Origin: Klebsormidium nitens
Lineage: Eukaryota; Plantae; Klebsormidiophyceae
Direction of reading: 5' to 3'
DNA: 64,000 nt
Assembly: GCA_000708835.1 (NCBI GenBank)
Contig: DF237330.1
Coordinates: 26,261 to 90,260, forward strand
Shown: positions 385 to 44,990 of the stretch, one piece after another
Numbering within the stretch: the first letter of the stretch is position 1
Layout of the letters: each line of letters opens with the position of its first letter
Translations under genes and position numbers: made by a program
Notes under the pieces: generated by a model
What the model was told of the DNA's origin: nothing
Databases searched by the model: none
The model's input: only the letters and a program-made list of their open reading frames with translations

Positions 385-13362
<12,978 letters not shown>

Positions 13363-13399
13363 TTTGCTGGCCGGTGGAATATGCAAATAAGCAGGTGCT

Positions 13400-14321
13400 T
13401 GCGGAAGATTCTGAAAGAAAGTGCTTGGTGTTCTCGAGCAACCTCTATTTGATCCTCTGCCAAGGAAGGAAGAGCAGAGACGTATGGAGCTGGGAAGATA
13501 CTGTCCGGTGATCACAAAGTCTCGGTGCAAGATGCAATGCTGCCAAACCGTGGAAGTAGAGCACCTTGTGCAACGCGTCGTGATTGCTGCAAACTCAAAA
13601 AGCTGCGCCGCAACCTTCATGGGGTCATCATAAGGCACCAGATTTGCAAAGGATCTGTGCGGTCTTGACAACCAATTCTTCGCTATTGGCCTGCTGTAGG
13701 CTTTCTAAGATACACAGACACGACTGGACCTCGAACAAGAGTCAATGGATGGGGACTGCCGCCATTGCACAGGGAGGCCGCCTAGGAGCTTACAACAGGC
13801 ATCAGAACCAGCACTTCTCAAGCGCTTTCAAAAACTTGCCGAGCTTTTCTACATGTCCACCCAAGCTGCGCACACCTGCACTCACTGCCTCAGGAGTCAG
13901 GCTACGTACAGGGTTTGGAATTTAAAGGAAAGCATTCAAAACGCATGGCGCGAAAAGTTGATCTGGCAAAGCCAGCCTCAAAAGCCAGCGCGCGCGTGAC
14001 ACGAGGCATTGGACTAGGAGAATCGCGTTCCGGTCCAGATCGCGGATCCTGTTCTCAACCGGAATGATCTTCCTCTTGAGCCTCGACTCGAGAGCTCAAG
14101 AGCTACCTAGGTCCTGGGTAGATGGAGGAGGAGAGCGCCTGGCGCACTGTCTGGTGCAATAAGAATGGCGGACTCTGCAGCCTTTCGAAACAGCAAGTAC
14201 GGGAGGGATGAATGTGAGCAGCAAAGGTGTAATATGATGGATGTGCCCGGCATTCGGGGCGCCCCTTGATTATCGCGCCCGGTTGTGCTTAGGAACATAG
14301 ATTATTGCACGAAACTTAACC
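13400..14321. promoter_or_regulatory. Probable bidirectional promoter / 5' UTR region shared by RecQ and RSH1
   Basis: The two inferred ATGs diverge 960 bp apart. There is a CG-rich stretch at ~13950-14110 and a minus-strand acceptor-like ctttctttcag near 13410, suggesting a RecQ 5' UTR intron. The TSSs are not determined. Confidence 0.5.
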
Positions 14322-23300: not shown

Positions 23301-26035
23301 TTGAAAGCTCTTTTCAATAACGTACTTCTTTTCATCTTGCGAAGCTCGTACTTCTCGTTATAACTGGAGAATGAGTCCCCATGAGAACTTCTTAAGTCTA
23401 GGAAGCCCCTTTATGGAGCATACGGCACTATGAGAAGGACCAGGTTGAAGCAAGTAACTCTTTATGCAGCGAAAAGCTTTTTGACCAACATGTCATCCCG
23501 TCTCCAGGTAAACGGGAACAGCGTCCCCGTAAAAACGGTCCTTTGCAATGCCGACGTCGTTGAGATCCTGGAGTACGAGGGCGACAAGCGAAAGGCCTTC
23601 CGCCGACATCAGCAGTGGCTAAAGGACGCCAGAACGCGCAGCGCCCGGCACAAGCTGACGAAATACCTGCGCGAGACGGGCGTCACGCTCGGGGAGGAGT
23701 TAACCGGGGACTTGGTTAAGGAGTTTGTGTTAGAAGACGGGGCGGGGTCGTGGTCCGAACTGGTCGAGAGCAGCTCGTCCGGGGAAGACTCGGACGGCGT
23801 CTCGGACGGTGTGAAAAGGCGCGGGGCCGGTGTGAACGGGCACGGGGTGGAGTCGTTCGACACGCAGATAGACGAGGAGGAGAAACGGCTGCTCGCGCAA
23901 CGGATCGAAGAGGAGGAACGGCGGGTTAATGAACGGTTAGCGAGCAACGGGGCCGCATCCCCAAGCTCGAACGGGCGGGTTAAGGTAAACGGGTTTGCGC
24001 GGCCCGGGGGATCCCCCAAAGGAGAAAACGAAGCGGAAAACGAGGCGGGGGTGGTGTTCCGGGGGCATCAGCACCGGCAGCTGACGCAGTGGCACGAAGA
24101 GGGGGAGGCGAGCGTGATGTGGTTGGACGTCCGGTGTATGGACCGAAAAGGTGAGCCGCCTGCTTTTATCTGGTCGGCGAACGAGACCCGGTTCACAAAG
24201 AAAGGACCCGTTAGCATTGTCGATTGGCGAGACTCGGTCTGAAAAGGAAGGACCCGAGATTGTCAAGTGAGCGCCCGCTTGCATTCGGCGGAGAGGTCGT
24301 ACCGTAAGCTTGAATACCTGGATGTCAGGATTGCAGTTTTGTGTCTGCATGTAGTCCAGAAACTTAAAAGAAAGCTCAAGCGAGACCCGGGTGTCGGTGC
24401 TGAGAATAGAACCGCCGATCACGTATGAGCTTCTCAATGTGGACGTCTGCAAGCAAGACTGAAGCTTGCATGATTTTGTGTGTATGAAGTTCTGATGAAC
24501 TTACTGAAAGGTGGACTTGTCTGTCCATATTTTTACGACAAAAGAAGCACGAGTTACCTGCCTTAAGATCTGGTTGGGAAACGGAGGCCTATACGCAGGG
24601 GTTTCTTCTGCTATTCGAAAGAGTCTTCTGCTGTGCAGTAATTCTCCTCCCACCATCTTCCATTGTTTGCCCAAGTGCAAGCTTCGAACTCCGACCCCTT
24701 TTGATCCTTGCTCCCAGTCCCTAGTAGGATGAGCTTCACTTAAAGGGACGCGATAGTGGGTTCCCTCCCTGGCTGCAGCTCATCGAGCTTTTCTCTTTCT
24801 GAAAGATTGTCGTCAATGCAGTAGAGGCAGAACCATATCCAGGTTAAGTCTTCAAACCCTATCCATCACTCCGGAGGCCCTGAAATTGAAAGCCGCAATT
24901 CTCATCAATCACGACCGCAGTATTTGTCTGCGGCTCATGAAGGTTGACTTATTCTGGCCACAGGTCTTCTAGCGGACGTTTCTCAGATCCTGTCCGCATC
25001 CGGGTTCAGCATCAAATCCTACACCGGGCACACCGTCCGGGGGTACGGGATGATGCTGTTTGGGATCGAGCTGGAGGTCAGCCAGCAAACCAACGTGGAC
25101 AAGATGGTAAGCGCTTCTGTTCTCTAGGGTTTTGCCCTCAGGAGGGGTCGTCGGGGCCCGATTTTGTAGCGACACTTTTGCAGCATTTAGTGTCTGGTTT
25201 TTTGCCGCTGACGTCCAATTTGTGTCAAAACCAAGCCGTTGCCCTCATGTCCCTAACGGAAGGGTTATGCATCACTGATGCCCCGTGAATAGCCAACACA
25301 GAACTCTGTTGCTTGGGTTTGAGGTGGAGGTTTACCGGCACACCAACGTGACCACTATGGTTAGCGCTTGAGCGCTTGAGTCCTATTCTCAACACTTGTG
25401 TTTGTTTGGTCGCTAAGCCAGCGAATCTAGTACCCAACAGACAACTCTAACGTGGCCAAACCGGTACGCGATCAAGGCTATCATTGATTGCATTAGTTGT
25501 CGTACCTTTAAGGACGCTGTCTGTTTTGAGCCCGGAGGGTACCCACCGATGGTTCATTGGAAACGAAACGGTGAACGTCGAGTCCATTCCTGGACCCCGT
25601 TTTAGTTTCTGCGTTTGGGTTTGGGATGCAGCTTTGCCCGCAAAGTAATGGGAATCTCTGGTTTTGAATCTTGCTCTCTGCTTTTGCACTGGAGAGGAAA
25701 GTGCGAAACAGAAATAAGTGGTAAATCTCCACAAATCCCTCGTAGTTCCAGGTTGTACTGTATCTGCTTGATGGAATTTTTGGTAGGCATGCCCCCAAAG
25801 GGCTTAAGACGGTATGCTTGGTATGGTCAAAATGGTTGAAAGCACCTCATTGCTCGCAGTGGCCGGATTCGTGCAGAATTTTGCATCCTGGTTGGTCACC
25901 CGAAAGATCCTCACATTGTGGCAACTCCTTCCGCAGGCGACTGTGCTACAAGAAGTTCTGAGGGTCCAAAATGTGACCGGTTGGTACATCGGTTGCACGC
26001 TACGGCAAGCCTCGTTGATGTCGAAGAGCAAGTAG
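14322..26035 (+). CDS. RSH1: Plant RSH1-type RelA/SpoT homolog ((p)ppGpp hydrolase HD, synthetase-like, TGS, ACT), probably plastid-targeted; 14 exons, ~908 aa
   Basis: Exons: 14322-14367 (tentative), 15185-15516, 16052-16117, 16544-16636, 17053-17286, 17742-17819, 18895-19106, 19722-19845, 20402-20638, 21301-21409, 22010-22320, 23508-24150, 24964-25106, 25937-26035; phases are consistent (2727 nt). Motifs: AFDAHDGQRRKSGEPYIIHP, GLLHDTVED, VKLADRLHNMRTL, KPNGYRSLHT, EVQIRT, the RSH1-clade signature WLDSIREWQEEFVGNMTAREFVDT, TGS LPKGATVIDYAY, ACT DRKGLLADVS. The N-terminus is Ser/Arg/Ala-rich, like a transit peptide. Confidence 0.93.
18190..19255 (+). repeat. Four upstream copies (acceptor + 5' exon) and one downstream copy (3' exon) of RSH1 exon 18895-19106
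   Basis: ag|c(a/c)(c/t)(t/c)acatcgcc(g/a)acgag(a/g)cgctgcg-like starts at 18195, 18399, 18566 and 18739 precede the true start at 18895. gccaaagccaagc-g-g-t-tggaggac is copied at ~19215-19242. Confidence 0.9.
20222..20965 (+). repeat. Copies of both ends of RSH1 exon 20402-20638 in the flanking introns
   Basis: Acceptor copy cag|ttgcgcatcattctggagcccaaacc at 20225. Donor copies ccgttgattccgct-aaggtgcag|GTA have GT at 20796 and 20959 (true GT at 20639). Confidence 0.85.
22420..22975 (+). repeat. Four copies of the 3' end and donor of the RSH1 TGS exon
   Basis: ...gcagatggc-aa-aggatggt-gg-gc-aag|GTGAGG recurs with GT at 22486, 22635, 22805 and 22964 (true GT at 22321). Confidence 0.88.
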
Positions 26036-27971
26036 AAAAAGCATAGGAAAACGTGTTGATTGGTCTTGGTATGGCTTCCCGCACGCACCGAGATGCAAAC
26101 GTAATCCTCTGGTTGTACCTGTAAATATGAACGTGTTCATTGCTTTTGAAGACAACCATTCTAGCTTATGTCGCACAAGAGCGGTGTGTGTGCGGTCTGG
26201 ACCTGCTCATCCAGTGGATGAATTGGCGTCTCATCTCATCATGCGCGAACTTGGGGTAGGATACTCACGACCGCTGGTAAATTTTCCTATGCAGTCGCCA
26301 TGATCATTGCATGCCATGGATTGCCATGCAGTCAATGGATGCCAGGACGATCTGAGCCAGGCAACTGAGTCCAACTAAAAACAAGTAATTTGCACATTGA
26401 TTCGATCTCATGCAAGATGGCCTACATCAGCAGCAGCTGAGGGGAGTAGCATTAAATGTATCATATCATTCGCACTAATTACATATTGTCGGTCGTACTG
26501 AGTCTCTTAATTTTGGCAATGATTGTCGCGCTGCGCCATGCTTCTGGAGTGGGCCAGCGCATGCAGGCCGGCACTTGATTACGTCGTCCTTTTCGATCCA
26601 AGTGAAACACTTCGCCGTTACACTGCAAACTTTTATGCAGACTGGGGCGGCAATACGTGACTTGACGTGTTGACAAGATGAATGCATGCCTTATAGCACT
26701 AGGAAGCGACTCGGAATCGAAAGGTCTTGGGGAACGCTGAAGAAAGTCACTTGCAAGTAATACCGTACAGGCTGCTGCATGAAATGTTCTCGTTCTGATT
26801 AAGTATAGTCTGCTCAATAAGTCAACATTGCAGAATGTTGAGTAGCCGCCTGAGTCGGAGGCAAAGGTGACTTCGCGGGCAACTACTTTCTGGTGGTGGT
26901 GCGCGCTAGCTAGATAGTATAGATAGTCGCCGGCCGATTTGCATGCGGATGCTGTATAAGCAGCTAGCCGCCTAGAGTACCTGAAGTCTGGTCAATTGAA
27001 GAATGATCAACTCGAGTCGAAGCAAAAAGCATCATAAGACAGACCCATGTTTAAAGTCGATGCTTCTTCGAAACCCAAATCCAATGATCCTAGGAGCATC
27101 GGATGCTCGGATGCTAATTGGTTCAACACCTGGTGGACGACGGAACATTTAAGCGCCTAAGTACGTAAGTATAGTCTAAGTTGTCAAAGATAGCCCTAAA
27201 AGGGACGAGTTCTAAAGCTTGATGACGAGATACGAAGAGCATTCAGGATCCCAAATTGGGTACTAGGAATGAAGCGAAGAAAAGCGAAAAGAGGAAGCAC
27301 AATCTTTCCGAGCATTGAGTCAAGTCAGAACGGTGTTATGAGTTCTCAATCAATCCCGTGTACGGTAGGGCCGAGTTTAACCCGCGTACGCGTGTCCTCT
27401 GGGAATGGCGTGTTCTTGTCGCGGTGCGCGCGCGCCATATCATATCGCGCCTAAACCGTGACCGGTAGCGAGCAGTGCTTCGCCTTCTTATACCTGCGCG
27501 CAATATCGAGCTTAATCCATCAAATATTGCTATGAAGGGAACCCGTGATGTCTGGCCGTTTTCCTCCTCTTAAGCCAGCATGCAATTAAAATCTGAGGCC
27601 TCGTATAAATCAATCTGAGGCCATAGAAATGCATTCGAAGCTGGCTACGTCGGGCATTAGCGTACTGGAATAAGCCAGCTAGCGCCTTTTCCCGCCTTTG
27701 TGTCATAGATTCACTAGATAGATTGTTCCTGCGGCCTTTATCACATGCTGGTGAAAGTGAATCCTTATGGCAGAAGTTTCCAATGACGTACCTGCCAGTG
27801 GAGAGGGAGGAAAGATTGGGAATCGTAAGAAAATCTCGGTCAGGTCTTGGTCTTGTTGGCCGGGGTCTTCTGACTTGTGCCAGAGTCGCCGGACATAACA
27901 TGCCAGGGTACCCGGTACGCGTATACCTGATGACCACTGAGGGAGGGGCGGTCACTCTCTTAGTGGTGGAA

Positions 27972-28262
27972 TATAGCCGCGTCCGCTCCTTCGCAGCAAG
28001 GACCCTGAGCCTCGACTCGTCACGAAACTCCCCAAAGTGTGGATCCTGTACATTCACGTATCAAAACCGTACACACCGTGTTCGTGTACGCCTTGTGTAC
28101 GAGGCTGATGCAGGGCCTGTGACACGTGTACGAGATCGGCATGTCGTACCCGGCGTGCACAGGAGAGGCATGGTGCTGTCCGTATGCAGCTCATGTACCA
28201 GAATGACATGCGAATGATGCAAGCTGATGTGGCCGAGTCCCGGCCGTGCCGAACTTGTACAC
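27972..28262 (+). repeat. Left terminal/subterminal inverted repeat region of the Plavaka element
   Basis: 28043-28074 atcctgtacattcacgtatcaaaaccgtacac matches the reverse complement of 43451-43483 (attcttgtacattccggtatcattctcgtacac) at 25/33. Further collinear blocks: tatagc, gcagc, gagcct, tcac..aact.ccca..gtg. Five GTACAC/GTGTAC hexamers lie in 28069-28262. Confidence 0.7.
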
Positions 28263-28687
28263 GTTTTGCACACAAAACGTGCAGTTCTGACGTGCCCACT
28301 GTCCGGGCTGACACGTTCGATAAATAGCTTCACGAGGAGTTCCTACGTTGTACGCTTACATCCTTTATCAGACAGTAAACAGACTTCGTTCTTTGTAAGC
28401 AATCGAGGGCTGGTTTTTGATAAGGTGGGCGGCACGGAAACATCCATTCGATGCAACTCAGCTTGTACAAGGTGCAATGGTCCAGAATCCATTCACGCTT
28501 GAATCATTGATTCACTTTGATGTGGCACCTGACGCCGGGCTGAAACGGAGCCAAACCGGGACACATATCGAAAAACTTGCAGCATGATTTGAGAGAAGGG
28601 AGCGCCAGGAAGGTCCACGAACCGATTAATGTACAAAGGAGCCACCTTGCGAGCCTGCAACGTAGCTTCGTTGTCTTATGATTCTGA

Positions 28688-31600
28688 TCAGGACTCGACT
28701 TTGTACCACTTGAATCGACTCAAGTAGAAGCTTTCCCCTGAGTCGTCAGCGAAATCCGGAGCTATGTACACCATTCGCAGGATGCTATCCAACTCAATGA
28801 CGTCGTAGAAGTCTTTTTGCTGTCCACCGGAGGTATACTTCTCCCACTTCAATTGCCTGCAAGTCCTTGCATCGAGTCTGTCCGAACCGTTTGCCCTCTT
28901 TTGTACCTTGTAGTATCGAACAAACGCAAGCTCTCTGGTCTTTCCGTGCTGATCGACCAGAGAAAACAAGAGTCGGAGTTGCCCGTAATACTCTGGCCCT
29001 TCCGGGTCATCTTCGGCCGCTTTGATTGCCACGTCGTTGTAGTACGGCCGCTCATCGCTGAATGAGACCGCCGCGCGGGCGTGCATCACCGTCGGCTGGA
29101 AGCGCGCTCCAATACCTGGAGCGATAGCGGCAGCGTTCGCCACGTGCACCTGGCAAATGGTTGTGAAGCGGTCAATGAGCAAAATGACCGGAATAGATCC
29201 AGGTTTACAAGAAACGGAACGAATCTTGGAAGCCAGACGTGTCAAACTCAGCTCTTTCATTCAAGGGTCATCGCTTTGGATTCGGTTGCAGCCTTCGCAC
29301 TCAGCCTTCGCACTCAGTGATGTCCTAGAAGTCAGTTAGAAACACGGGAACGGACTTCGATTCGAACCGGTCGAAGATAGAGAGCGCCGCGGTTCAATCG
29401 AAGGAAAAGTCTATAGAGAAATCTGTAAAGTACTGCTTCAAGTCCACAAATGCAAGGAATTACACTACTTCATTTCCAGGCCAGATTTGCAACCAATTCT
29501 TTATGCCTTCTGTGACTGGTCATCAGCTTCTACCAAAAAAAACCTACCTCGGAATTCAGGCAATTGGGCTGGTTTACTAGCAAGGCACCACCTCCTCGCA
29601 CGCCGTGAAGCCCGCCCGCCAAGAAGACACGTGTACGTCGCTCCAGCTGTCGCAGCTCCGGTTGCGCTGCAACCCGAGCAGCAACAATATCGCGCGTCTC
29701 TGTGGAGCGGGGCAGGTCGGTGGCGGTCTCCACTCCGCCTGGCTGCAGCCATGCCCATTTGAAGGTCGTTCGGGTACTTTGAAGTGTGTGTCCGACAGCC
29801 AAGGCCTGCAAACAAAACTAATCCAGTTACATGGTCACGAAACGGACGCCGGAAGACTGCCTATCAGGTTGTTACCTGTTTGCAGGAAGAAGCTGCCGCA
29901 AAATGCATCCAGCGCAAGACCCACATTGAAGGAGAAGTAGAGCCGTGCACCGGGCGACGTGTTCTTTCAACGCCCACGTGGCCAGCGACTTTAGTGACCG
30001 ACAAAATGGGCTCCTTTGAAAAGGTTCAGGAATGTTCCGTCACAATCCTGGTCACTCGCAAGAATGGTCGTGAAATCAACGAGGCCAGACAAACAAAAGC
30101 AAAGAGGTTGATGGAATGAGGGGTTCTTGTCCAAAATCTCTGCATAAACTTCGCTCAGTTGATGCAAGCGTCTTGAAAGCATCTTCTCAGAAAGCCAGCC
30201 AGAAATAAAGTATACGGGTTCAAGGGAGGCTCACCTGCCGGGAAACCACGGTCTGGTGCCGAACTTTGGGAGGGTCCCGCACGAAACTGCCTCCGTAAAA
30301 GGAAATGCGGTCCGATATGTTTTCCCGTCGTTGATTGTGGCGAACAATCTGCAGAAGATGCGAAGTACTTCTTGAGACAGAATTGCAGAATCACAGAATC
30401 CCAGAATCACCGCCTCTGCACATGACATTTACGTTCTAGCTTCGAGTTCCCCAATAGCATTTTAAAGCGACAAAGCCCTCACAGCACGACTTAGTCCTGA
30501 GAAGATCGAAACCGACAACGGTAGGAGGAAGCGCAAACGACCAAGCCTCACTGATGCGAGAGTGGAAGCAAAAGAAACGCTCAGCACGACTTCCCAGATG
30601 TAAAACTCCTACGGCGAAGCCGGTGATCTTGAGCGTGGGGAATCTGCTCACGTGTCAGCAAGCTCAATCAGACTGAGTTAAATGTCGAAGCACATCGTCG
30701 GAGGGATACGAAACTTACGGCTCAGAATCAGAATTTGTTCACAGAGGAGTAGGCATGTTAGCAGAAAAGCGGAAAAGCGGAAAGAGGGAACAACGGACAG
30801 CGAGTAGTGGTCCTGAAAACGTGGCCGCAAGAGCAGCGACTGAAAGGAAATTCCGTTTCTGCTCCGTTGCACATGGGATTCGCAGGACACCGGTGGCCGG
30901 AAGCTGAAAGGCCACAGCGAAAACTCCTCAAGATAGAGACGGCTGGTGGCAACTTCACCAGCCATCTCGGATGGATTGAAGGGAGCTCCGTTACAAGAAT
31001 AGAACTGACACTTGCGGCGAGACCGAATGTTACGGAAGAGGTTCATTGCCACGGTGACGGACTTACGTAGGATTGCGTTTTCTCGATCGCAATGGTGGGC
31101 GGGAAGTCCGATGAAAAACAAGATCTTGAATTAAAGAAGGATCCAAGTTTACATAGTTACCTGTCCCTCTGCGTTTCTCTTGTTCGACATTCTGTACGGC
31201 TTTTTGGACGTTTGGCCGTGGAAGCTTTCTCCCGAATCCGTGTCCAGGTGCTTGAGCAAGCCGTTCTGCCAGATGTTGTCGGGATAGTGCGGGATCTGGT
31301 GGAACTTAATAAAGTTCCACTCGGACTTCTGGTATTCGCCGAAGGTATCAAGAGCGGATTGTCCGAATCTGAACGAGGAATTAAGTCCGCCCTTCAATTG
31401 AGGACATTAACAAAGCGTTTATGACCAGAAACTGATCATCAGATCAACGTTGGGGTCTCTCGGGAAGCTTCGAAAACTCGATCTCTAGGATGTCTTCGAA
31501 AGGAAGGCTGGGCACACAGAATGGCTGAGAATTTGCCGCCAAACATGCATTTTCAAATAGAGAAGCGTGTCTGGACGCACCAGTTTTGGCTTCCACACTG

Positions 31601-34600
31601 ATCGGCCACTGATTGAGCAAGAGAGCAAGGAGCTCGGCAGGTCCTTAGCAATGATTGTTCAAGTAAAAGAGTGCTCAGAGAAGCGTTTTTAAGTTTCACC
31701 TGAGTCCCAGCTCTCGACACTCCTCCAGGCTCTTCTCGGTGTGGTACTGAGGGCGGTTGCGGCAGGTAAGCAGCATGTACCAGTCCAAGAAGCTGACGAA
31801 AACGTCGGTGACAGGATCACTGCCGTTGACTTCTTCGAACAACCCATTGATGGCAAAGACGAAGACCTGCTCGTGTTGATTGTGCGAGAATCAGAAAAGA
31901 CAAATGTGACGCTGAAATGGTGCAAGTCATGGAAGACATGTCACACCGGCCCCGACCTCCTCAAGATATTTTTGTTGTAGATATAAGTTTGAACGTTGAG
32001 ATCGCTTGTTCGGACACAAAAACACAAAGCCTTGCTTTGTCACAAGCAATCAACCATTCAAAACTTTGTGACAGCAGAAGCAGTGATCACAGCTTTGAAC
32101 CTTGTTACCGAGCTTTGCGATCGAGCCTGTTTTGGTTACATGTACTTCTTGAAGAAGGGACTCTGCAACCTGATCATTTGCCCGCTTCTCTCCATCAAAA
32201 CTTTTCGAGCTGAGACGACCATGAGAAAGATAAGAAATCAGTCAGGAGTCGGAGGTTCCAGCTTGTCCTAATAAAAGCTTCGCTAAAGTACCTATTGTAA
32301 ACTCGAAGATGACTTGCCTGCATCACGTTGCGTTGCTCAAAAGCTTTAAATTTCTTCGTGCTTCGCACGTATCTTCCTCGGCCAGGGACACGGAAGCCTG
32401 GGAATCGTGGCATCGATCGAAGGCGGGAGTCGATAAGCCTGAGCTTGCGAGCGCCTTCTCGTGGGCTGTACTTGGCCTTCACGTACTCACGTAATGCGTT
32501 CAAAAGATGGACCCATAAGCCGAGATCGATGCCATGGAGTGTGTCGGGGGCGAACGCATTGAAGCTATTGCGAAGTTCAGATGGCACCTCTGGAACCAGA
32601 TCCGTGAAGAAGTCCCAGAGAGGCCCCTGCCAGGTGAAAAGGTTTTCCAATCAACCCTTGCCGCGGTTTTGAATGTAACCACTCGCCGGTCGTCTTCCTC
32701 AACGACCCCTCCAAAAGTGAAAACTTCATCATTGGCTCCAACCTAAGTAGAATTTTAATTTGCAGACGGATGCAAAGCCTGAAGAGCGGCAACAACAGTC
32801 GGACAAACGCTCTCGACGGCGAGAAGATTTCTTGCACTTTTGAACATTTGACTCGTTTTGCGCCGGGTACGCCTGCGTTGTCACATTGCCAGGCCTAGCT
32901 TTAGAGCTGTAGCCTGTGACTTTCAAACTTGACCTATAAAGTGTGGACACTTACCTTCATGGCAATCGGAACACCAGCGTCCTCTAGCAGCTTCTTTGCC
33001 CGAGCAATCTCTTGTCGGTTTCCGGCCAACTCGACGGACTTAAAATGCTCAATGACGCGCCTTGTGAAGACCTCAGTGCGCGCTTTAAAGTTCACATCCA
33101 AAGCATTCAGGCGGGACGGAGCAGCTAAGCATTGCAGGCAACGCCCACTTCGCACAAAGGCAACGTAGTAATGTTCCTGAAGGTCGGCAACGTAGGAGTG
33201 CAGATATGGAAACACGCAGACACGCGCCCCATAGGGGTCGGTCATCCACACTCCCCTGCAGATGGGAGGAAACAAGACCGCTTCAGTACTGTGGACACAG
33301 AGTAGAGTCTCTCGATTGGCGCTTGAGAACACGGTAGACTGTCGGTCCCCCTCACACCCGTTCTGGTTACGTGTAGAACGCGCTTCACAGCCCCGTGAAA
33401 CACCCGACAGAATTTTGATCAGCCCCAGGTCTTTTAGATGCCTCCAGCACTCCATTCAAGGTGCGCGCTGGAAGCATTGGATTTCTAGAGACTCTCTCCA
33501 GCCAATGTTGGACAGTCCCCGGGCTGTTGATCGAGGCTCTGGACAGCGCTCAAGTTTAGTGGCACGCTGGACGAGGCTCACAGCCCGGAGGAATTACCAC
33601 TCTCCAATAGCCCCGGGCTATGAGTTGCTTACTAACTTGGCAGCGCGCGCTGGTCCGCTGGATCTGGACATTAGCAGCCCGGGGGAACAATCCTTCCTGC
33701 CGTGAATTGATCAGACATAATCTTTTTATGAGGAAACAGCCCCTCAGAACCTGCTCACCTTGAGCTTGCCTCCTTGAGAGGAGTTAACCAAAGTGTTAAC
33801 TGTTGGTACATGAGGAACATCTTCCGGCTCGTCCAATTGACGGTGTCTCGTATCAGCCCTGAAGAGACGAAGATGCCTTGCAAACAGTCAATGGCCAAGC
33901 TTTACGGTCTTTGAAAGATTGGGTGCCCAAGTTCTGCTTGAATTTGATGGCGTAACTGCATTTTTTTGAACAGTCGGATTCTATAAAAGACAAACCGTAA
34001 GAGGAGGCTTTCTCAAAGAACATTGACAAACCACAGTCCTTGCGAAAAAAGACAATTAACATCATTCTCCAATCTGCTGGATGACGAGCCGACTTCCAAA
34101 TTTTAGCCGAATCCAATCAGAAGGAAAGCGCACCATGCCAAAGTAGCTAGCATAGCAAATTGACCTCAATGCTTACCATGCTCTGGCTGCTCTTTGAGCT
34201 GTGCAAAGTAAGCTGCCAGCTCGGACCCAACTCCGAGGCGCCGTTGCATCTCGAGATCAGCATTTTTGATGGCCAGGAGCCCGGCCCAGCCAGATGTGTG
34301 CAAGTCATTGGAGACAGCAGTCTTGTCGCTATACGGAGAGACCGCGAGTAGCACCGCATCCTCTGGAATATACTTCTGAGACAAAAGACAAAACGCATAA
34401 GTTCGGTCTAGTGGACGCGAAGCTCATACCGCAGGATGGGCATTGACAGCCTAGCAGGATTGCGCTGAATCGAGGTCGACTCGGCTGAGATCTACAGCCT
34501 CCATCCAGACTAAGCACGCTACCAGATCACCAAGACATCGTACCATGGCCAACACCATGTTCCAAGTGACCCAGATGCTTCAGCAACAGCCTTCTGTTTG

Positions 34601-35964
34601 CAGATTACTTCAAAAGCTAGGCCATCGAAGTGCAAAAGAGGAGTTCATGAAGAAGGGAAGGACTTGTTTACCTGGAGGTTTATCATCTTCTCAGCGGACG
34701 AGGCATCTGTTATACAACGGTCTCCCGCATTGTTGAATTCTTTCCGCGCGCTGAGTTTTATATGGCCACGCAGTTCGGGATTAGCGAACATCCTTCGTAG
34801 CAGCTCAATAGGATCTTTGCGGCGGAACCAAAGGTCTTGGTGATCAGAAGGGAGCCTCATGTTTTCCACAATAAAGCCCTGCAACCAGGAACGGAATTAT
34901 TCGAGCACCATGCCTCAACGATGAACAATATCAGCTGCGCAAAGGCTTGCTTTGGGAATCAGAGTGTCACAAAAGTGCCTCAACTTGAGGATTAAGTGCC
35001 CCTGCTTGTCAGAGAGACATTTTGCACAACTCTTGGTGTCTTTGCTAGAGGATGTAAAATAGAAAAAGGGGACTCTGAATCTGGTCCCAACACATCACTA
35101 AAAATAAAGAACAAGCTGGAGCTGACAACCTTGTGGAGTTTTTGAGCTGCAACATGAGCCAGTTCTGAGCAGCATGCGGTGCCATCAGAACAGACAGCTC
35201 AAAAGAAACAAAGACCTGCTCACCTCGCTGTCCACATGAGGGGTGTCCTGATACTTCCTCAATTCTCTTGAGTTTGAGAACGCTGCCCTCCACTCCTCTT
35301 GGTTAAAGTCTGGATGTAAAAGAATGCGCAAGAGCCAGTCTGCCTCGCTGTTGGAAGACCCGCTGCCCTGACCATTGTTTGTGAGGAAGTTTGCAACCTC
35401 CACTGAGGTTTTAAATCCCCGAGGCACAGCGTCATCATCTGGCTCAGGGTGCGGGCCGTTGCCGCCCCCACCACCAAGCCTATCATGGGACTTGAGCCAC
35501 TCTTCTGGATCAAAAGGAAGCAAGGGTCTAGGAGCCTCAAAACCATCTTCAGCAGCAGAGAAGGGGTCTCTGTCCTCGTCCGAGCTGGATTCTGAAGCGG
35601 AGCTGCTAGATTCATCGTCGCTAAGCTCAAAATCATTGGCAGCTGCAGCCCCAGAGTTTTGTTCAGGCTCATGGTCTAGGGGGTCTGATCGGAAGCTTTG
35701 TTGATCTAAAGACTGGCTGGCTGCAGGAGGGGTGCCTAAGGGATGCACTGAACCAGCGGGCGCTTGACCCTGTTGGCGATCAGCAGCGATGCGAGCTGCC
35801 GCCTCCGGAACTTCTGGCCTATCTTGCACTAGCTGTTGTGGTGGGTGCCAGCCATCAGGCAATCCACCTTGTCCACATGCTCCAAGGCCCCGTCGATGGT
35901 TGCCGAGACTCTGAGAAGTGTCAAACTTTTTTCCACAAATTGGGCAGGGGAAATTGCTGTCCAT
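28688..35964 (-). CDS. Plavaka-family transposase with an N-terminal Zn-finger; 11 exons, ~1021 aa, apparently intact
   Basis: Exons: 35224-35964, 34672-34878, 34177-34375, 33759-33858, 32955-33255, 32318-32626 (GC donor), 31700-31866, 31161-31368, 30235-30348, 29548-29805, 28688-29149; phase-consistent with no stops (3066 nt). Motifs: CPICGKKF..SLGNH..C, YSDKT, YVADLQEH, PDTLHGIDLG, RFPG, FLDWY..HTE, WNFIKFH..HY..I..G..DTDSGESFH..KKPY..SNKR, YYGQLRLLF, DVIELDSILR.VYIAPDF..FYLSRFK. This motif series is characteristic of Plavaka transposases. Confidence 0.9.
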
Positions 35965-37524
35965 GGCAATTAGGTCCAACTTCGGTACAAAAATTTAGCT
36001 CACATGATCAGATTCGCTTCCCGTTAGCTCCTTTGAAGCGAAAGGTGATGCACTGTGGCGCAGCATGCGGCGCAGGCGCCGCTGCCAGCAGCCTGAGCTC
36101 CTTCCTTATTGGGTGCACCCTTAAGGGCCCTGCCCAAGATAACAGTACTTAGCCCACTGCCAAGTCAGCCGGGACTCAGCCTGCTTGATTTTTCAGGTGT
36201 TCAAGCTTCAATCAACGCATCAGATTGGACGCATGGCGTCTGCTGATCTTCTAAGCTGCTCGAGCGCAGGGTGTTACTCATCCTTGGTAAAAGTTGAGTA
36301 CCTAGTCTGAATGTCTGAAAGGAGAATGACAACCCAGGGCCAATGACAAGTGTACCTACAGTAACAGCTTCCTTCTGCTTCCACTAGCTGCTGCCACTGG
36401 TATCACTGGTTCAGTACGGCGTATAGGTACCTGTAGGCTGTAGTCTGAGGTAATGATCCGATAACACGAATTATTTTTCCCATTCGTAAAGTCATAGACC
36501 CGGATTCCACAGTCAAAAGTTGGGATTTCAAAATGGTTGATTAATCATGAAATGGTCCTCAGGAGCCCCAGAATGGCCAAGCTCAGATCTAGATTCCCAT
36601 TAAATTCCATTACAAATGGCAACATAGGGCATTTTGAGTTTTGTCAAAATCAGCATAAATAAAGCCGCTTTTCTGGTCGGATTGTCGGAATATAATATGT
36701 AATAATAAAAATGGTTCGGAATCACCACGCGTACTAGGTAGGTATTGTACATGCATGACTCTGTCCCATGATGTCAGGCCCGGTCGGACTGAATCTACCG
36801 TACCTAGGTCCTAGTCCGAGACTCCAAGATCTGCCAAATGTTGCCATTGGTACCGGCCACTCTGATTTCACGTGCGCGTCCATCTTCATGAACGCATGCA
36901 AGCCATAAGATCTTCAAGTGCTGCAACCATGGCCTTCCGATCAAGTCTTGAGCCCAATCAGGCTGGCCACGTGTATCTCGTGGGACGTCTGAGTCACATG
37001 AGCGCACTCCCTCTCAGCCAATCGTGTGCTACTTTGAGGCAACTTGCATCTGCCGGGCATCTGCCAGGGCCGGTGCCGCTGCCTACCAGCTGTAAACAGG
37101 AAAGACTGAGCTGACGCAACATGCTGATCAATAGGGGATCAACGGCAGCTTTCGTTTCAAATCTTTCAGCCGTCAATGCAATGGCCGCCATGTTGCTAGC
37201 CGTCACAACGGCGGGGAAAAAGGGCGGGAGCTGGGCCTTTTTGAATCTAGGCGTGAGCGGCGTGAGTGAGCTGCCACTGCTTGCATTGGAAGTTGGAGGC
37301 TGCTTCTGGGAGTGACAGAGCAGGCTCTGTCAGCAAGCAGCTAGATTCTGATACCGGTACTGGGCATAAAGCTTTCTTTGGATCTTAAGCAGCCACTCAG
37401 AATTGCAGAAGCTTTCTTGAGGGGACAACGTCACCTACGGTCCAGCCCATCCCAACCTGAAGACATCGCTTCTTGATGGGGTTTTAGACAGCAGTGTTTT
37501 ACTTTTTTCCTGCAGCCTCTCACA

Positions 37525-40500
37525 ATGAGCTCAGCCGATGACGATAATCCCCGCATGATTAGGCGTTCTCAAAGGGAAAGGAAGGAGAATCGAGCGTGGA
37601 CTCCTACTAAGCAAGTGCAGCGACACGACGTTCCCACTGTTGACCCTGATGCAGAGACATGTGAGGGATCTGAAGGGGACTCGCACACTCCGATCCGCAA
37701 TGTGAACGCAAGACCTCGACGGGACTATGTTCCATCGCCGGGGCTTTCTGTGAGCACTGGGACCCCAAAGAGCAAGGAGGAAGAATCTGACGAAGCGTCT
37801 GGTTCTGCGTATGATGGTTTAGAAGATGAGGGCGAGGATGGTGTGCTTGGCGAGGCAGCATCTGCTGCGGACAAGGAGTATCAGTCGCTGAAGGCGGAAC
37901 TGGATGCTCAGCTTGAGAAAGCTGCAAAGAAGAGAGATGCTGCACAAGCACGTGTGCTAAAGTCCAGCCAAGCCCCCAGCAAGAAGAAAACAAGTGGACA
38001 TGGCGCGTCCCAGAGACCGTCCGATGCCGAACATCCTCCCAAGCGCAGCGAAAGAAGACAAGGTGAGCACCTTTGACCTTGACTATGTCCTGCGCAACAA
38101 ACAAACTTCTTGATTTTACAGGACAGCTTGTGCTCAGCGCACAGACCATATGGCTCTGACTTCCGATCATTCTGCTCCTTGCCATGCTGCACCATTTTAT
38201 CTTGCACCAGTGAAAGGTGCGGGAACACTCTGTTAGCAGCTTGCAAGGTTCGAGGAAGGTTCCCATCCAAAGTCTTATCCAGATGACCTATAATAGTTAG
38301 CAGTCTGACCATATGTCAATCTGCTAGGTGTGCTACAACAAAAGCAGGTGCTCAATGATGAAGCAGACTGTGTTCAAAGGTTAAACAAACCCTTGGCTTG
38401 TGAGTTGTCCTTCTTGTATAGAAACAATGACTTTGTCTGCTCCGTGAAATGAGCGTATCTATCATGTTGGACAGCCTTGCTGATTTGCATCTTGATTTCT
38501 CTATTGCAGATACTAGGCCCAAGGAAGTGGACCAGGAAGCGGCACGGACGTCAGCACTTGACAGGCGCAAAGGGAGCGGTGTGGACAGCGGCCCCGCTGC
38601 CAGCGAAGGAGGGAGACACAAAGAGCGACCTAAAATGAAGCCACTGTTCACTCCAGTCAAAGAGAAAGGTGACGTCATCAGACGCTACTTGCTGTAGTTG
38701 GCTGAAGGTTTCTGATATCTAACATAATCAGTTATTCGGTTGAGCTGCCACGATGGCATACTGTTTCTCCTTCAAATGCCGTCCCCAGGCTGGTTGCTTA
38801 TGGCCACTGTTTGACCGACTTCTCACTTTCTTTGGCCTGGCGGGTCAGACATGGAATGCTGAAAACGCATCTGCAATTAAGCTTCCTAGAGTCGGGACAA
38901 TCAGAATTCTGCTTGTAAGCACTTACAAGTTGCATCATCCCGACTGGTAGCATTTCTCCAGACCAACTATCTACTGTCCATGAGTTGAAGACTGTTTTGC
39001 TTTATGCTCTTGCAGCTTGAACAAGTAGCTTAGTAAAGTTGGTCTTTCATTTGCGGGCTCGAGATGTAAGCTTCTCATGCAGCAAGCCTCCCACCTATTC
39101 ACGATACTCTGGCTTCGCTAAGTTCATCCTGACTTCGTGCTTCATCTGCAGGGAAACCAACTGACAAAGGGAGGGACAACTCAAAGCGCCAGCGCTCCGA
39201 CACTAGGTCCGCGCGCGAGCTGGAGCTGGAGGAGCAAGTTCGGAAGCAACAGCGGCAGATGGTCGACCTCACCAACAAGATCAACTCCGCCCGTCCTCCG
39301 CTGCCTCCCGACATGGACAACCAGTGGAAGGGCTGGTATGGCGCGCCCCCTGGGTTTCCCCCGTTCTGGCAAGGCCCGCCTGCATCAGCCCTTCCCTCGG
39401 CACTTTCCAACGCCGCTCAACCGAACACAACTGGGGGCTCCTCAGTCCCAGCTGAGCTGGTGACATCTCCGAACCTGGTAAGCGGGCATGCCTACTACTG
39501 ATACATGTGCACAATCATACAGGCACTTTGAGACAGAAGTCGGACACGAGCACGTCATGAGGACAATTGCATGTCCGTAGTGAGTCTGATCCGGTACTGT
39601 AGGTCTGTGAAGCAAGACGCTGCTGAAGTTGGACTTTCGATCAGAGAACGGGACGATTTATATGCCGTTCTATTTCGAAAGGTGTTGGAACGTTCACTCT
39701 TATTCTGGTCGACTGAACGTGGCTCGGTGACTAGCAAGAGCTCAAACTTTAAACGTTCTAGTACTGCAACGATCTCTTCGCCATTGTGTGCGCCATCGTG
39801 TGCACAGAAGCTCCTCACGGTTGGCGCCTGATCTTGCAAAAGAAAGTCTCGAGAACTAGGACTAATAAACATTGACCAGCCAGAATGTTTTCTTTAACTC
39901 GCGCGTACTGGTTGTGTGCTTTTGTTCCTGCTGAGTTATCATGTGTTCTAGCTGCTGTGAATCAGCGATCGACACAAAGCACGCAATCAAGGGAAGGCTT
40001 TGCAGTGTCTAACGTCTAATGAGTTGGGAGACCCAAGACTCCCGGTAAAAGAGATTGCGGGAGTGGCATGTATCAATGTTCGACTTTGCGAGGTCGACTG
40101 AGTCGGTGACAAGTTCATGGAGTTAATCCCCTTGCTTGTTTTCCATGATGCAAGAATTTCATCGTCAAGATCATCTCCGACTTCTATAAGAGCGCGGACA
40201 GTGGGGCGACCTTCTACCCGGAGAACCAGGCCTTCATAAAGACGAGAATGGAGAGGGAGCTGGCCCAGTCGCCTTCGGATCCCCAGTGGCAGAGGCTGTG
40301 GGCGCCCGGGGGTGCCTTTCAAAAGGCCGCCTCCACCAAAATCATCAACCAGCGCTCCAACTACGTCACCAAGATGAAGGAGGGCATCGTCCAGTTCTAC
40401 AAGCCCCCGCACCATGCCGCGCGAGAGTTCTTCGACTTCGCCGAGCGGGAAGCCGCAGGTCGGGACCCATCTCTTGCGAAGATTGTCTGCTTCGTTTTTC

Positions 40501-42772
40501 CCCTGTGAAGTCAGGTCCGATAGGAGTACTTATATTGCTGATCGAATCAACTTGAAGAGTGCGTCCATCAGAATTATCGCGCCGGTTTGTTTCGTTCGAC
40601 CTCGTATGTCCGCGGCTGATTGCTCTTCCCGTTCCTCCACGTTAGCCTGCTCCGTCAGCACTTGTCCGTTCGTTCCCGTCTTTTCACTCTGGACTTCTTT
40701 CGATGCTGTCCGCATCCGTCCGTTCTCGACTCGTTATGGCCGCCTGAAAATTGGAACGTAATCCGGAAAACAAGGACTCTGTTTCTTTCTAGGTTGTTCC
40801 GTCCCCCTTTCGCCTCTTTGTCTTTTATCTCTTTATTCAGGGCTGGCAACTATTAACCTGGGTGATCGAGCCTCGCATGTTACTGAATGCAAAGCAACGC
40901 GGGGCTCTGTAATTCAAATTGTGCACGGAAAAGTTTGGAACCTTCTGTCGACGGAAGACTTTCTGATAGTAGAATCTCTAGAAGCTTTCAGATCTGCTGA
41001 CTGATCATTAGTTCCGCTACGGTGAGCACGCAGGACGTCGGGTGCTCCTCAGCTCGAGAGGATGAGTACTCAGTTCCCGGGTAAAGAACAAGGTTGAAAT
41101 CTTGGCCAATTGATTCCTATTCCTCGGCGGTTTGATAGAAGTACCCTCCTTTCGATTAAGATGACATCACCGATCTTTGCGGTCACGGTCCACAAACTTT
41201 GAAATAGACCTTGATGAGGTTGTCAGATCGAGTCTTAGCCGTCAGAATGACCGTTTCCTTCTTCACAGGTGCCACTTACCGCAAGGAGCCCGAGCCCGGT
41301 TTTGATCCGTTCGGGCGAAAGGAGTTCCTGGAGACGCTTGGCCACACCTTCGTCACCAACTGGAAAGATTTGCCTCCGGAGAGGCGGACCGAGGAGCTAA
41401 AGCTGAACGTCCAACAAGTTGCCCTGGCTGAGGCAGTGGTAAGTCAAATTGGATTAAGTTAAGTCTCTTTAGGAAGTAGAGTCTGGCCCTCTCCAGGTGC
41501 CTCAGGCTTTGTCGGTTGGTTTGTTGCTTGGGAGGGACTTTTACAATTCTTTGTCAGCAAGGTTTTCCGCTCACATCCTGCTTTTGTAGAAACCTTAGTA
41601 GTTTCGAACCCCTTTCTCCCTTCTATCAGGAGGGACCCTTACCAACGTTTAATAAATCGAGTCATCAATGTCATCATCTGGTTCGTTGTTTGCTCTGGTT
41701 TCAAACTTGGGTATGCACTATATCTAAGTTTTCATGGCACCCTTTCTCAAGCATTCTCTGTTTGTCAGAGCGAATTGACACAGCTGCTAGGACCCATCTG
41801 CTAGGCATTTGATATGTCCTTTTCTGGACCACTCATCGTACAAACCGCCAACGTATTCATTGCGAGTCTTCTGCGGGCTCCTGTCGTGCAGCCGTGGAAT
41901 CAGGCTTTTGCACTCCAAAAATTCAACAATCTGGTCATGGGCGGAACCAATAGCAGGCTCCAATTGAAAGTTGTTGTAGGCTGTCCAATGCACCAAGCTT
42001 TGTTGGATATTTTGTCGGTCTGAATCCTATTTCAAGAAAATCCTTTGGCTGTCTCCCAAACCTCGCTCGAAGCCTAGCGATTTTCGGTCGGACCAAACAC
42101 TGGCTTCTCGTATTCTCGCTTTCATCCACTTGTTCAGTCCGTCACTCAAACGTGTCTCAATGTGGATGATATATTTCGACGGTCTGTTTGCTTTGACGGA
42201 GCAGCTAATGTAGAGTTTGCGATATATCTTTCCAGTTTGCGGTGTGCTTCGGGTATGATGGCAACGTCGGCAACATGAAGGAGCTCCCCAAGAATGGCGT
42301 GATGGCGATCCTGTACAAGAAGGCAATCGCTTCCGTCAACGACCTGAACGAGGAGTACCTGAAAGCTGCGGTCGACGTGCTGCGTCACCCCCTGCTTCGA
42401 GAGCCCGCTTCAAGGGTTCCACCGCCTGTCCCCAGCCGTCTGAAGGCCCTTCCCCCTAGCGGCAGCCTCCCGGGCGGCCCGCCGGTTGCAACCGCCCCAA
42501 GCCTCCAACCCTCGGGAACTGCGGGTCACGTCCCCCCAAGCTTTCCCCTCGCACCTCCCCCCGTTCATCGGGGCTGGAACGGGTCACAGGGTACGGACGG
42601 GCTACCCCCAGTCTTCGAAGATTCCCCGGACGACTGGCGCATGTCGCCGCCGGGCAGGGGGGATCCCTTCGGCCCGCCGGGCAGCTATTGGGGGAAACCA
42701 AGAAGCCTGTTGGAACGGAACTTCATGATCGCTCAGGGGCATCTGGTCCCTGATTCAGAAGCTCAGGAGTAA
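37525..42772 (+). CDS. Transposon-borne accessory protein of unknown function (acidic/basic disordered N-terminus, coiled coil, Pro-rich segments, helical C-terminal domain); 6 exons, ~677 aa
   Basis: Exons 37525-38062, 38510-38668, 39152-39477, 40155-40458, 41269-41438, 42236-42772 are phase-consistent (2034 nt). The acceptor at 40154 is AAG and so less certain. Exons are GC-rich and coding-like. The gene lies between the element's inverted ends. Confidence 0.78.
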
Positions 42773-43329
42773 ACGTTTTAGTCGGTCGGCCGGAACCTCG
42801 TCGTGGACGTCACCGGGAGACCAGCGAAGCAAGGAAATTGAGTATAGCAGGGTATATTTTTATAATGCATCTCACGTAGTGAATTCAGTCGGGTTCCAGT
42901 CTTTTGATAGAAGCTATGAGTTTATTTGTTAGCCGTCTGAGTTCTCGTTTCCAGATCTGAAACTGAGTAGAGCATCCGCCAGGCAGTACGTTGCATACCA
43001 CCAGAGATACCAGAGAGCTTGCCAAGCAAATACCATACGTACCTAGCAGGCTAGCTGTAAGTAGCGAAGGGGGTGACATTCCTTATGTCTTGAGTCTGTT
43101 TTTGTAAATTCAATCTTTTCCATGCATTTTGCGCGAGGCGATTGACCGGATGCAGCCCCCGACATGTTTGGACATGTGTATGATGGACAAACTGACATTC
43201 TACGTATCCGATCCATCTTGTGCATTCATGTCACACCATTCTTATGCATTTCGGAGACTGGATTGCGCAAGGTGTGTATCCCAGATGCATGCCGGACGGA
43301 AGCTGTACTCTATCATTCTCGCACAGCTT

Positions 43330-43559
43330 GTGTACCCAGAGCGTATGGGCCAGACCTCCGATACCGTATGGCTTCTGTATGGTACACGTTCGTGTACACG
43401 TCATGTATGAATCAGCAAATCCCCGATACCCTGTGGCCTCGTGCACCACAGTGTACGAGAATGATACCGGAATGTACAAGAATGGTACCGGAATGCACCA
43501 TGGGAAGTTCTGTGATAGGCTCTTCTAAAACCGCTGCCCGCCATTTCAGGACCGCTATA
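43330..43559 (-). repeat. Right terminal/subterminal inverted repeat region of the Plavaka element
   Basis: Inverse counterpart of 27972-28074. Five GTACAC/GTGTAC hexamers lie in 43330-43456, with a local duplication of taccggaatg. Confidence 0.7.
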
Positions 43560-44990
43560 CTTAAAACGTGGCAGCTCCTTTCTGTCCAATATATTCGTCT
43601 GCTTCATTAAAATACCCTCTGTTAGTCGAATTCACTGCGACTATGATTGAGCAGCTCACCAGATCTGATGGAGAGCCTCGTATATTGGCCTTACCAATGG
43701 GTTAGGCAGTGATTAGATGGCGTTGGTACGATACCATGTTAATGATATTAGTCAGTGCGCATGGTGGCTTATAGCGCTCACTGCAGCTCTATGGGCTTAC
43801 TTCCTGGCCCCTCTACATAACCGGCCTGCATTTTCAGAGCCCTATCCCCATAACCGGCGTTATGGCTTGGCCGGCGGCTTCATACCCTTTGATCGACGCG
43901 GCTCTCTTCCAAATATGCTGGCCCCAAGTGGGGAGTGACCCCCGGCCCTCCCCACTGAGCGGGAAAGGAGACAGGCGGGGAGTGGGACAGGCCTATCGGA
44001 GAGGAACGAGCTGGAAGAGGGCAGAACATGTTATGATGTCCCCAGGCTCCTAGGCCAACATTTCATAGTAGCTGTAAGCTCCTTAAATATGGATCTTCAA
44101 TCTTCTGTTTCGTTCTTACATTTGAGCTCCATTGAGACGTAATGTTAAGGGTTTCAGAGCTGGCTGGAAGGAGCAACTAAAAGGCATTGAAGCTTGAAAT
44201 TTACACCGTGATCATCGGACCGATTTGGTCTGTTTGAGCGTCATAGATCTCAAGCCGCCCGAGTACAGACCCAGTACAGATTTAATAACATTCGGTATAT
44301 ATGTATGAGCAAGTCAGACTCCATCTGTATATGAGCCGCGCCAGCTTCTCGAAAGTCGCGCTTATTCATGCAGTACGTGCGCACGCTACTTAGCGCCTAG
44401 CTCGCTAGCCGCCATGAGGACTGCATATATGAGGAGTAGGAGCGCACCGCCTGCGTCAATCGCCGCCCGCGCACAGGGTTTCGGAAAGGTCACGGTCGGC
44501 GTACTGGACTTGAGCACGTGAACTATATCTGGCTGGAAAGCGTCTACCTAAGGGTTAAACCAACCAAGGTCATTTTGTAGTGAACCCACTACCGGTATGT
44601 TCAGTCCAGACTCCAGAGCCCCGGCCTCGATCGAGAACCGAACGGCCGGCCAAGGCCCCCCCGCCCCTCACGACTCTCCCGCTGCACTTGGGATTCCAAA
44701 CCCCCAACGGTCAACCCCCACCCTCTGAACTGAACATCATAGGGCGCGCGCGCGCGTCAGCTTCAAAACGACCTTTACGCTTTAACCCTCAATTGGACGT
44801 TTCATGCATGGCCTACTCCAGTACTACCGCCCGGCACTGAGCGGCAGTGCCGCGGGCACTAGTGCCGCCTGCATGTTTGCCCGCAAACGGGAGAAACACT
44901 CGACACGAGTCGTCATACCCGGCAAACGTCAGGCGACGGAGTTGTTGCTCGGCCGACTCTACCGAGGGGTGTCGGCCTAAACATGGTCTA

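Follow-up and report, generated by a model that had tools for sequence, protein, structure and literature searches.

The window analyzed here is a 64-kb stretch of the Klebsormidium nitens genome (assembly GCA_000708835.1, contig DF237330.1, positions 26,261-90,260 of the forward strand), and all positions below refer to it. Two genes lie head-to-head in intergenic DNA of this streptophyte alga, a Plavaka-type transposase gene on the minus strand and a second, orphan gene on the plus strand, and both are enclosed by zones of short repeats. The flanks of this arrangement (24.3-27.9 kb and 43.6-46.4 kb) are without coding signal, and ordinary host genes are found farther out. From left to right, the features are:

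27953-28275, no strand: left end zone, candidate terminus CAC at 27953, end placed within ~27950-28020
from 28053 (plus strand) and from 28116 and 28214 (minus strand): left 21-nt units, from the unit scan
28688-35964, minus strand: Plavaka-type transposase gene, ~898-923 aa, from Pfam, motifs, exon chain and codon table
28688-29149, minus strand: last transposase exon, conserved C-terminal domain of 153 aa, 70% identical to P0008
31161-31368, minus strand: exon with H(3)H (HQIPH) and the catalytic E (GESFH), by motif
32318-32626, minus strand: exon carrying DTLH; its last residues, NVMQ, precede a consensus GC donor (CAG/gcaagt)
32955-33255, minus strand: exon with the second catalytic D (ADLQEH) and C(2)C (CLQC), by motif and alignment
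34177-34375, minus strand: exon with the first catalytic D (SDKT), by motif
34672-34878, minus strand: exon 2, Plavaka profile positions 41-99, by Pfam
35224-35964, minus strand: exon 1, start codon and C2H2-like finger (residues 5-25), donor GAG/gtgagc
35965-37524, no strand: spacer of 1.56 kb between the divergent start codons, positioned from the two gene models
37525-42772, plus strand: second, orphan gene, 677 aa, six exons, stop-free GT-AG model
37525-38062, 38510-38668 and 39152-39477, plus strand: orphan gene exons 1-3
40155-40458, 41269-41438 and 42236-42772, plus strand: orphan gene exons 4-6
43301-43570, no strand: right end zone, candidate terminus GTG at 43568-43570, end placed within ~43515-43575
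from 43493 and 43472 (minus strand, tandem pair) and from 43305 (plus strand): right 21-nt units, from the unit scan

The minus-strand gene was assigned to Plavaka by matching its exons to Pfam one at a time. Two of them exceeded the 26.3-bit cut-off of the Plavaka family PF18759, namely the exon at 34672-34878 (29.6 bits, E 5.2e-7) and the open reading frame at 32937-33455 (37.4 bits, E 2.3e-9, profile 200-275), and no other Pfam transposase family was matched. The Plavaka identity proposed in an earlier, sequence-only reading of this DNA is thus borne out, and the four motifs that it had quoted were all recovered on the minus strand: SDKT at 34330, ADLQEH at 33188, DxLH (as DTLH) at 32545, and GESFH at 31232. 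A DDE triad in the expected order is provided by SDKT, ADLQEH and GESFH, carried by consecutive exons that join in a single frame-consistent model. Alignment with five relatives shows no variation at the second D, whereas motif alone identifies the first D and the E. CLQC follows ADLQEH by 12 residues, HQIPH precedes GESFH by 24, and the order D, D, C(2)C, H(3)H, E is that of Plavaka/CMCT in Kojima 2025 (PMC12730594).

A stop-free, phase-consistent path with canonical splice sites leads from the ATG at 35964 to the stop codon at 28688-28690. The gene had been described as an uninterrupted transposase of 11 exons, and the open frame stands, whereas the exon count varies from 9 to 11 with the model: 9-10 exons if a GC-AG intron follows NVMQ, and at least 11 if only GT-AG introns are allowed. 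The predicted exons include one of 78 nt at 34073-33996. We favor the GC-AG model because of homology to P0005, which runs from NVMQ directly into VLPF, the counterpart of VFVF in the next exon. Farther downstream, a direct junction from 31161 to 29149 is phase-compatible, and 29150-31160 on the minus strand is probably a single intron of ~2.0 kb. Additional exons proposed by the splice search at 31.0-29.6 kb were discarded as probably noncoding because of their codon score (31003-30719 ranks fifth and 30414-30235 fourth of six frames). Scored against a codon table built from host ORFs alone, 9 of the 11 exons rank first among the six frames. The finger in exon 1 matches zf-C2H2 with an E value of 1.9e-4 and 22 bits, under the Pfam cut-off of 25.2 bits.

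Few relatives of the transposase were recovered. A search of a large protein collection with the core exon returned only five matches, two of which (P0002 and P0004) were discarded as spurious repeat proteins, and a word search with exon 1, limited to proteins between 0.55 and 1.75 times its length, returned no relatives. Identity to the transposase is 65% for P0001, 70% for P0008 (a Logan ORF of 150 aa that shares the C-terminus) and 34% for P0003, P0006 and P0007. The relatives have intron positions in common with the transposase; one, after AMK, is common to P0001 and P0003.

Beyond the spacer, which is presumably a shared promoter region, the divergent six-exon partner described previously was confirmed as a stop-free plus-strand gene. 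Could it be a chance chain of open frames? The model comes from the splice search alone, and a low intron penalty invents spurious small exons. Against this, the six exons are recovered unchanged with the intron penalty set to either 9 or 11, four of them span 101-179 codons, and all six rank first among the six frames under the host-only codon table, an outcome with a chance of ~(1/6)^6; we therefore regard a spurious gene as very improbable. Codon usage is host-like. Attempts to place the protein, made exon by exon, gave no Pfam match and no PDB match. For exon 4, a word search with the length limits given above found no homologue, a predicted model (pLDDT 60) had no fold match, and an Atlas search gave nothing useful. 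The sequence-only reading had likened this partner to TnpA of CACTA elements, a comparison that finds no backing in these domain, structure and homology searches.

The ends of the arrangement are marked by repeats. Each end carries three 21-nt units containing GTACA, in orientations that are mirror-symmetric between the ends. Allowing up to 6 mismatches, the unit occurs at 7 places in the 128 kb searched, 6 of them inside the end zones, and Tandem Repeats Finder reports a period of 21 at 43452-43495. The densest 250-nt interval for GTAC in the 64 kb is 28026-28275 (8 copies, Poisson p 1e-6) and the second densest is 43301-43550 (7 copies, p 1e-5), and these two intervals flank the gene pair. 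The hexamers GTGTAC/GTACAC behave similarly, with 10 of 25 occurrences in the window falling in the end zones. The mirror-symmetric units and GTAC clusters had been missed previously, and they are stronger evidence for the ends than the terminal inverted repeat.

The placement of the units bears on whether both genes belong to the element. Because it has no homologue, the orphan gene is attached to the element by position alone, and it lacks any recognizable domain; it might have been captured, or be a host gene with no relation to the element, with only the transposase borne by a transposon, or the true element might be shorter and the right cluster mark something else. Yet the right units lie 533-721 nt downstream of the orphan stop codon, mirroring the left units 474-635 nt past the transposase stop codon, and no unit cluster was found between the two genes. 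We consider a transposase-only element improbable on these grounds.

The inverted ends themselves are less distinct. Terminal inverted repeats of ~75% identity had been claimed; what holds is that repeat-marked ends enclose both genes, but there is no clean terminal inverted repeat. The strongest inverted similarity spans 31 nt with 77% identity (28044-28074 versus 43451-43481); among 289 random controls, 7 reached its score. When the alignment is anchored at CAC 27953 and GTG 43570, the ends are ~55% identical over 160 nt, a score reached by 1-2 of 1000 random pairs, with anchors that had been seen beforehand. The outermost 12 nt match at only 8 of 12 positions, and the sequences at the candidate termini are CACTC and CACGT. 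Published PlavakaA/B elements have TGT..ACA or CATCA..TGATG termini and a 2-3 bp target duplication (Kojima 2025, PMC12730594); the outermost 12 nt fit neither type. A check for a target-site duplication, which had been proposed as a way to fix the termini, found none at any candidate terminus, and a systematic search for termini together with a duplication gave pairs at chance level only. The CAC..GTG pair at 27953/43570 is flanked by GGT and GCA, with no duplication. The inverted pair TGTACATTC at 28047/43478 likewise lacks a duplication, and further repeat units lie beyond it; TGT..ACA termini at this pair were rejected, the 21-nt tandem unit running beyond 43478 and the similarity extending outward on both sides.

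Our results support a model in which ~27.95-43.57 kb is, with reasonable probability, a single structurally complete-looking copy of a cut-and-paste DNA transposon of ~15.6 kb, belonging to the Plavaka lineage of the CMC/CMCT group. It appears to be alone in the window: a BLASTN search of the window with the element found no second copy, and comparison of the left with the right flank gave nothing significant. No relatives of the element were recovered in two metagenome scans, one genome-contig scan and one viral-contig scan; eight ORFs of the window were absent from a public protein collection on exact look-up; and an Rfam and tRNA scan of the whole window returned nothing. Protein kinase, histone and chromatin-reader domains were not detected in the element.

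An alternative is that this is an old Plavaka insertion that has lost its working termini and been immobilized, the host having kept the transposase with or without the neighboring gene. Several observations would suit domestication: the two frames are intact despite ends that share only ~55-77% identity and the loss of any target duplication, codon usage is host-like, and searches of the public protein collection returned no near-identical ORF. However, an element's ends can differ from each other outside a short terminal inverted repeat, and for this reason their divergence cannot date the insertion. In addition, the mirror-symmetric subterminal units are still recognizable, and the empty searches, restricted by length or to exact matches, have little bearing on copy number. 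We regard domestication as unlikely, less so than a transposase-only element, and continue to favor a complete transposon copy.

The sequence-only reading had further proposed that the element defines the structure of Plavaka outside fungi, a claim overtaken by the literature. Plavaka has already been reported in Archaeplastida, including streptophyte algae, where the lineage is recorded by presence only (PMC13519894), and giant multi-gene Plavaka elements of 17-19 kb have been curated in red algae (bioRxiv 10.1101/2025.02.11.637652). Because these reports are already in print, the picture of Plavaka distribution is unchanged, and the present element is a fairly ordinary further Plavaka of a kind already known from algae. 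If other copies confirm its ends, it would add one curated streptophyte-algal family, with a defined size, gene content, subterminal unit and intron-rich transposase.

Comparison with characterized systems helps to place the element. Like fungal Plavaka (Iyer et al. 2014; PlavakaA/B, PMC12730594), it falls in the PF18759 family, but neither the published termini nor the 2-3 bp duplication was found, it has no TET/JBP gene, its transposase has 8-10 introns, and it is ~15.6 kb long with an orphan second gene. The giant elements of the red alga Bostrychia moritziana are similarly large and also combine a Plavaka transposase with accessory genes in an archaeplastid host (bioRxiv 10.1101/2025.02.11.637652). 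Their accessory genes are PAG1, of unknown function, PAG2, with N6-adenine methylase and SET domains, and PAG3, with ParB-like/2OG oxygenase domains (bioRxiv 10.1101/2025.02.11.637652); Pfam domains of the PAG2 or PAG3 type were absent from every scanned open frame of the K. nitens element.

CACTA elements offer a parallel in layout. In En/Spm of maize, TnpA binds short subterminal repeats that occur in both orientations at both ends, and both element proteins are produced from one alternatively spliced transcript. The K. nitens element resembles En/Spm in its two-gene layout, in its subterminal motifs in both orientations at both ends, and in candidate termini that start with CAC. It differs in that its two genes are predicted to be divergent rather than expressed as one transcript, in that neither CACTA/CACTG termini nor a 3-bp duplication was found, and in that its transposase matches Plavaka and not TNP2.

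If the element works as En/Spm does, its subterminal units would be bound by the transposase through its N-terminal finger, by the orphan protein, or by both, and this binding would bring the two ends of the element together. The DDE core would then cut at CA..TG-type termini and reinsert the element with a short target duplication. More speculatively, and in our view doubtful, the 677-aa orphan protein could be a new TnpA-like partner that recognizes the 21-nt GTACA units and is required for Plavaka transposition in streptophyte algae; alternatively, the gene pair could have been recruited by the host. Were the TnpA-like reading true, the element would represent a two-component system of independent origin from En/Spm. 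The element also offers a concrete pair for binding tests, with the 21-nt unit on one side and either the finger-bearing transposase or the orphan protein on the other.

Finally, the conserved C-terminal domain in the last transposase exon was considered separately. A profile search of the PDB returned nothing relevant, and an AlphaFold model meant to show whether it folds as a BAH domain, built from a two-sequence alignment, had a mean pLDDT of 36.6 and was unusable. The language-model neighbors of this exon are fungal clusters, one of which carries DUF6830, and we note these as a lead only.

On balance, we think that the ~15.6-kb element at ~27.95–43.57 kb is probably a DNA transposon of the Plavaka lineage, present as a copy that looks complete, in which two genes diverge and the subterminal repeats resemble those of En/Spm. 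All searches and folding used single exons rather than joined spliced proteins. In the exon-by-exon Pfam scan, two stretches of the minus-strand gene exceeded the curated cut-off of 26.3 bits for Plavaka (PF18759), namely exon 34672–34878 (E 5.2e-7, 29.6 bits, profile 41–99) and 32937–33455 (E 2.3e-9, 37.4 bits, profile 200–275), and no other transposase family was matched. The four motifs quoted in the sequence-only reading were all recovered on the minus strand (SDKT 34330, ADLQEH 33188, DTLH 32545, GESFH 31232). CLQC lies shortly after the second D and HQIPH shortly before the E, corresponding to the C(2)C and H(3–4)H motifs listed for Plavaka as well as the broader CMCT group (Kojima 2025, PMC12730594). 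Exon 1 opens with a C2H2-like finger (E 2e-4, under the Pfam cut-off).

Our gene models come from our own dynamic programme, which combines splice sites and codons. For the transposase it gives a stop-free chain from the ATG at 35964 to the stop at 28688–28690. The preferred model comprises 2772 nt (923 codons plus stop), with consistent phases throughout and junction codons free of stops:

35964–35224, 34878–34672, 34375–34177, 34073–33996, 33858–33759: minus strand, transposase exons 1–5
33255–32955, 32626–32318, 31866–31700, 31368–31161, 29149–28688: minus strand, transposase exons 6–10

The earlier description of an uninterrupted 11-exon transposase thus stands as regards continuity, whereas the exon count depends on the model (10 preferred, 11 if only GT–AG introns are allowed). 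We prefer a consensus GC donor (CAG/gcaagt) for the intron after 32318 because the relative P0005, an ORF from the protein collections, runs NVMQ straight into VLPF, and our following exon opens with VFVF; the GT–AG-only alternative adds one 70-nt exon. The 78-nt exon 34073–33996 can be removed with the frame kept. With a codon table drawn only from host ORFs outside the element, the predicted frame was the best of six for nine of 11 transposase exons. The stretch 31160–29150 is best read as a single 2-kb intron, since exons programmed there rank only fourth and fifth of six frames. This intron is unusually long, the others in the gene being ~100–500 nt; it contains small tandem repeats at 30377–30410 and 30760–30783, and may conceal either decayed exons or an insertion nested within it.

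Similarity to the ORF fragments P0001, P0003, P0006 and P0007 ends at the acceptor at 33255 on one side and at the donor following AMK (32955) on the other, so these intron positions are common to relatives at 34–65% identity. A representative protein search with the core exon returned five matches, the best being P0001 (Logan ORF, 103 aa, 65% identity), with JGI ORFs next at 34–35%; two of the five were discarded as repeat artefacts. The last exon matched one Logan ORF, P0008 (150 aa, 70% identity, same C-terminus). In the Atlas, this exon has fungal clusters as neighbours, all uncharacterised and one with DUF6830 (a lead only), and its single-exon AlphaFold model has a pLDDT of 36.6.

The partner gene was recovered as originally described, with six exons, by the same programme at higher intron penalties (2034 nt, 677 aa):

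37525–38062, 38510–38668, 39152–39477, 40155–40458, 41269–41438, 42236–42772: plus strand, second-gene exons 1–6

Its protein is an orphan. It had no match in Pfam, even at E 10, or among PDB sequences; a word search with exon 4, which sees only proteins of 65–208 aa, found no match, an Atlas search gave no useful neighbour, and a weak single-exon AlphaFold model (pLDDT 60) had no fold match. All six exons score highest of six frames in the predicted one under the host-only codon table, and we regard a spurious second gene as very improbable. Parts of the protein are charged, coiled-coil-like or proline-rich, and exons 4–6 probably encode a globular region. No cargo domains (kinase, histone, methylase, TET) were found in the element's larger open frames.

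The inverted ends of the sequence-only reading are weak as a terminal repeat by itself, but their positions are supported by GTAC clusters, 21-nt units and an anchored alignment. The best inverted match spans 31 nt at 77% (28044–28074 versus 43451–43481), its alignment score was reached in 7 of 289 random controls, and BLASTN of flank against flank gave nothing significant. Across the 64 kb, GTAC is densest in the 250-nt windows 28026–28275 (eight sites, Poisson p 1e-6) and 43301–43550 (seven sites, p 1e-5). Both lie just outside the stop codons of the two genes. That the transposon is real and the second gene no part of it seems unlikely. The end zones (27953–28275 and 43301–43570) hold 10 of the window's 25 GTGTAC/GTACAC hexamers. 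A GTACA-containing 21-nt unit stands in tandem at 43452–43495 (period 21, 2.1 copies, 91% match). At six or fewer mismatches it has seven matches in the 128 kb searched, against ~1.3 expected by chance, and six of these fall in the end zones as a mirror image:

from 28053 (plus), 28116 (minus), 28214 (minus): 21-nt units, left end
from 43493 (minus), 43472 (minus), 43305 (plus): 21-nt units, right end

Only the right end has the tandem pair; on the left the outer unit is single. The seventh match (18528, minus strand, six mismatches), in an 18500 bin with five TGTAC sites, is probably unrelated to the element.

Anchored at CAC 27953 and GTG 43570, the ends align globally over 160 nt at ~55% identity, above 998–999 of 1000 random pairs, a supportive test only, as the anchors were picked after inspection; the outermost 12 nt match at 8 positions. 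The TGTACATTC pair at 28047/43478 was ruled out as a terminus because repeat units and similarity extend beyond it. Published fungal Plavaka termini are TGT..ACA or CATCA..TGATG (PMC12730594); neither is evident at the candidate ends. No 2–5 bp target duplication was found at any plausible terminus, and four collection scans (two of metagenomes, one each of genome and viral contigs) yielded no relative. An immobilised or domesticated unit strikes us as possible though rather doubtful. In the transposon that we favour, the transposase finger or the orphan protein, or the two together, would bind the 21-nt units; the two ends would then pair, and the DDE core would excise and reinsert the element.

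Plavaka outside fungi has been published previously. According to the Spirogyra genome paper it occurs in red algae, chlorophytes, streptophyte algae and moss (PMC13519894), and a Bostrychia preprint describes curated elements of 17–19 kb with three accessory genes (bioRxiv 10.1101/2025.02.11.637652). Our literature search found no description of Plavaka structure in Klebsormidium. Only two features seem worth pursuing, the mirrored arrangement of the 21-nt units and the orphan gene beside the transposase.

At ~52% GC and rich in introns, the DNA of the window is eukaryotic, with RecQ-like ORFs and an RSH gene upstream of the element and PAN-domain ORFs downstream from 46.4 kb:

7566–9122, 13021–13704: minus strand, RecQ-helicase-like open frames, motifs recognised by eye
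21568–24239: plus strand, RelA/SpoT-homologue-type (RSH) gene with TGS domain (Pfam E 3e-6), 3' limit near 24.24 kb, ~3.7 kb from the element's left end
46414–46983, 49563–50231: plus strand, two PAN_4-domain open frames (E 4e-10, 4e-11)

The adjoining flanks (3.7 kb left, 2.8 kb right) carry no coding signal and long ORFs spanning the left end score as non-coding, which places the element in intergenic DNA. The two PAN_4 frames may belong to a small gene family arranged in tandem. On both sides of the element there are short (GC)n runs, at 27426–27436 (0.5 kb left) and 44743–44755 (1.2 kb right), probably by chance.
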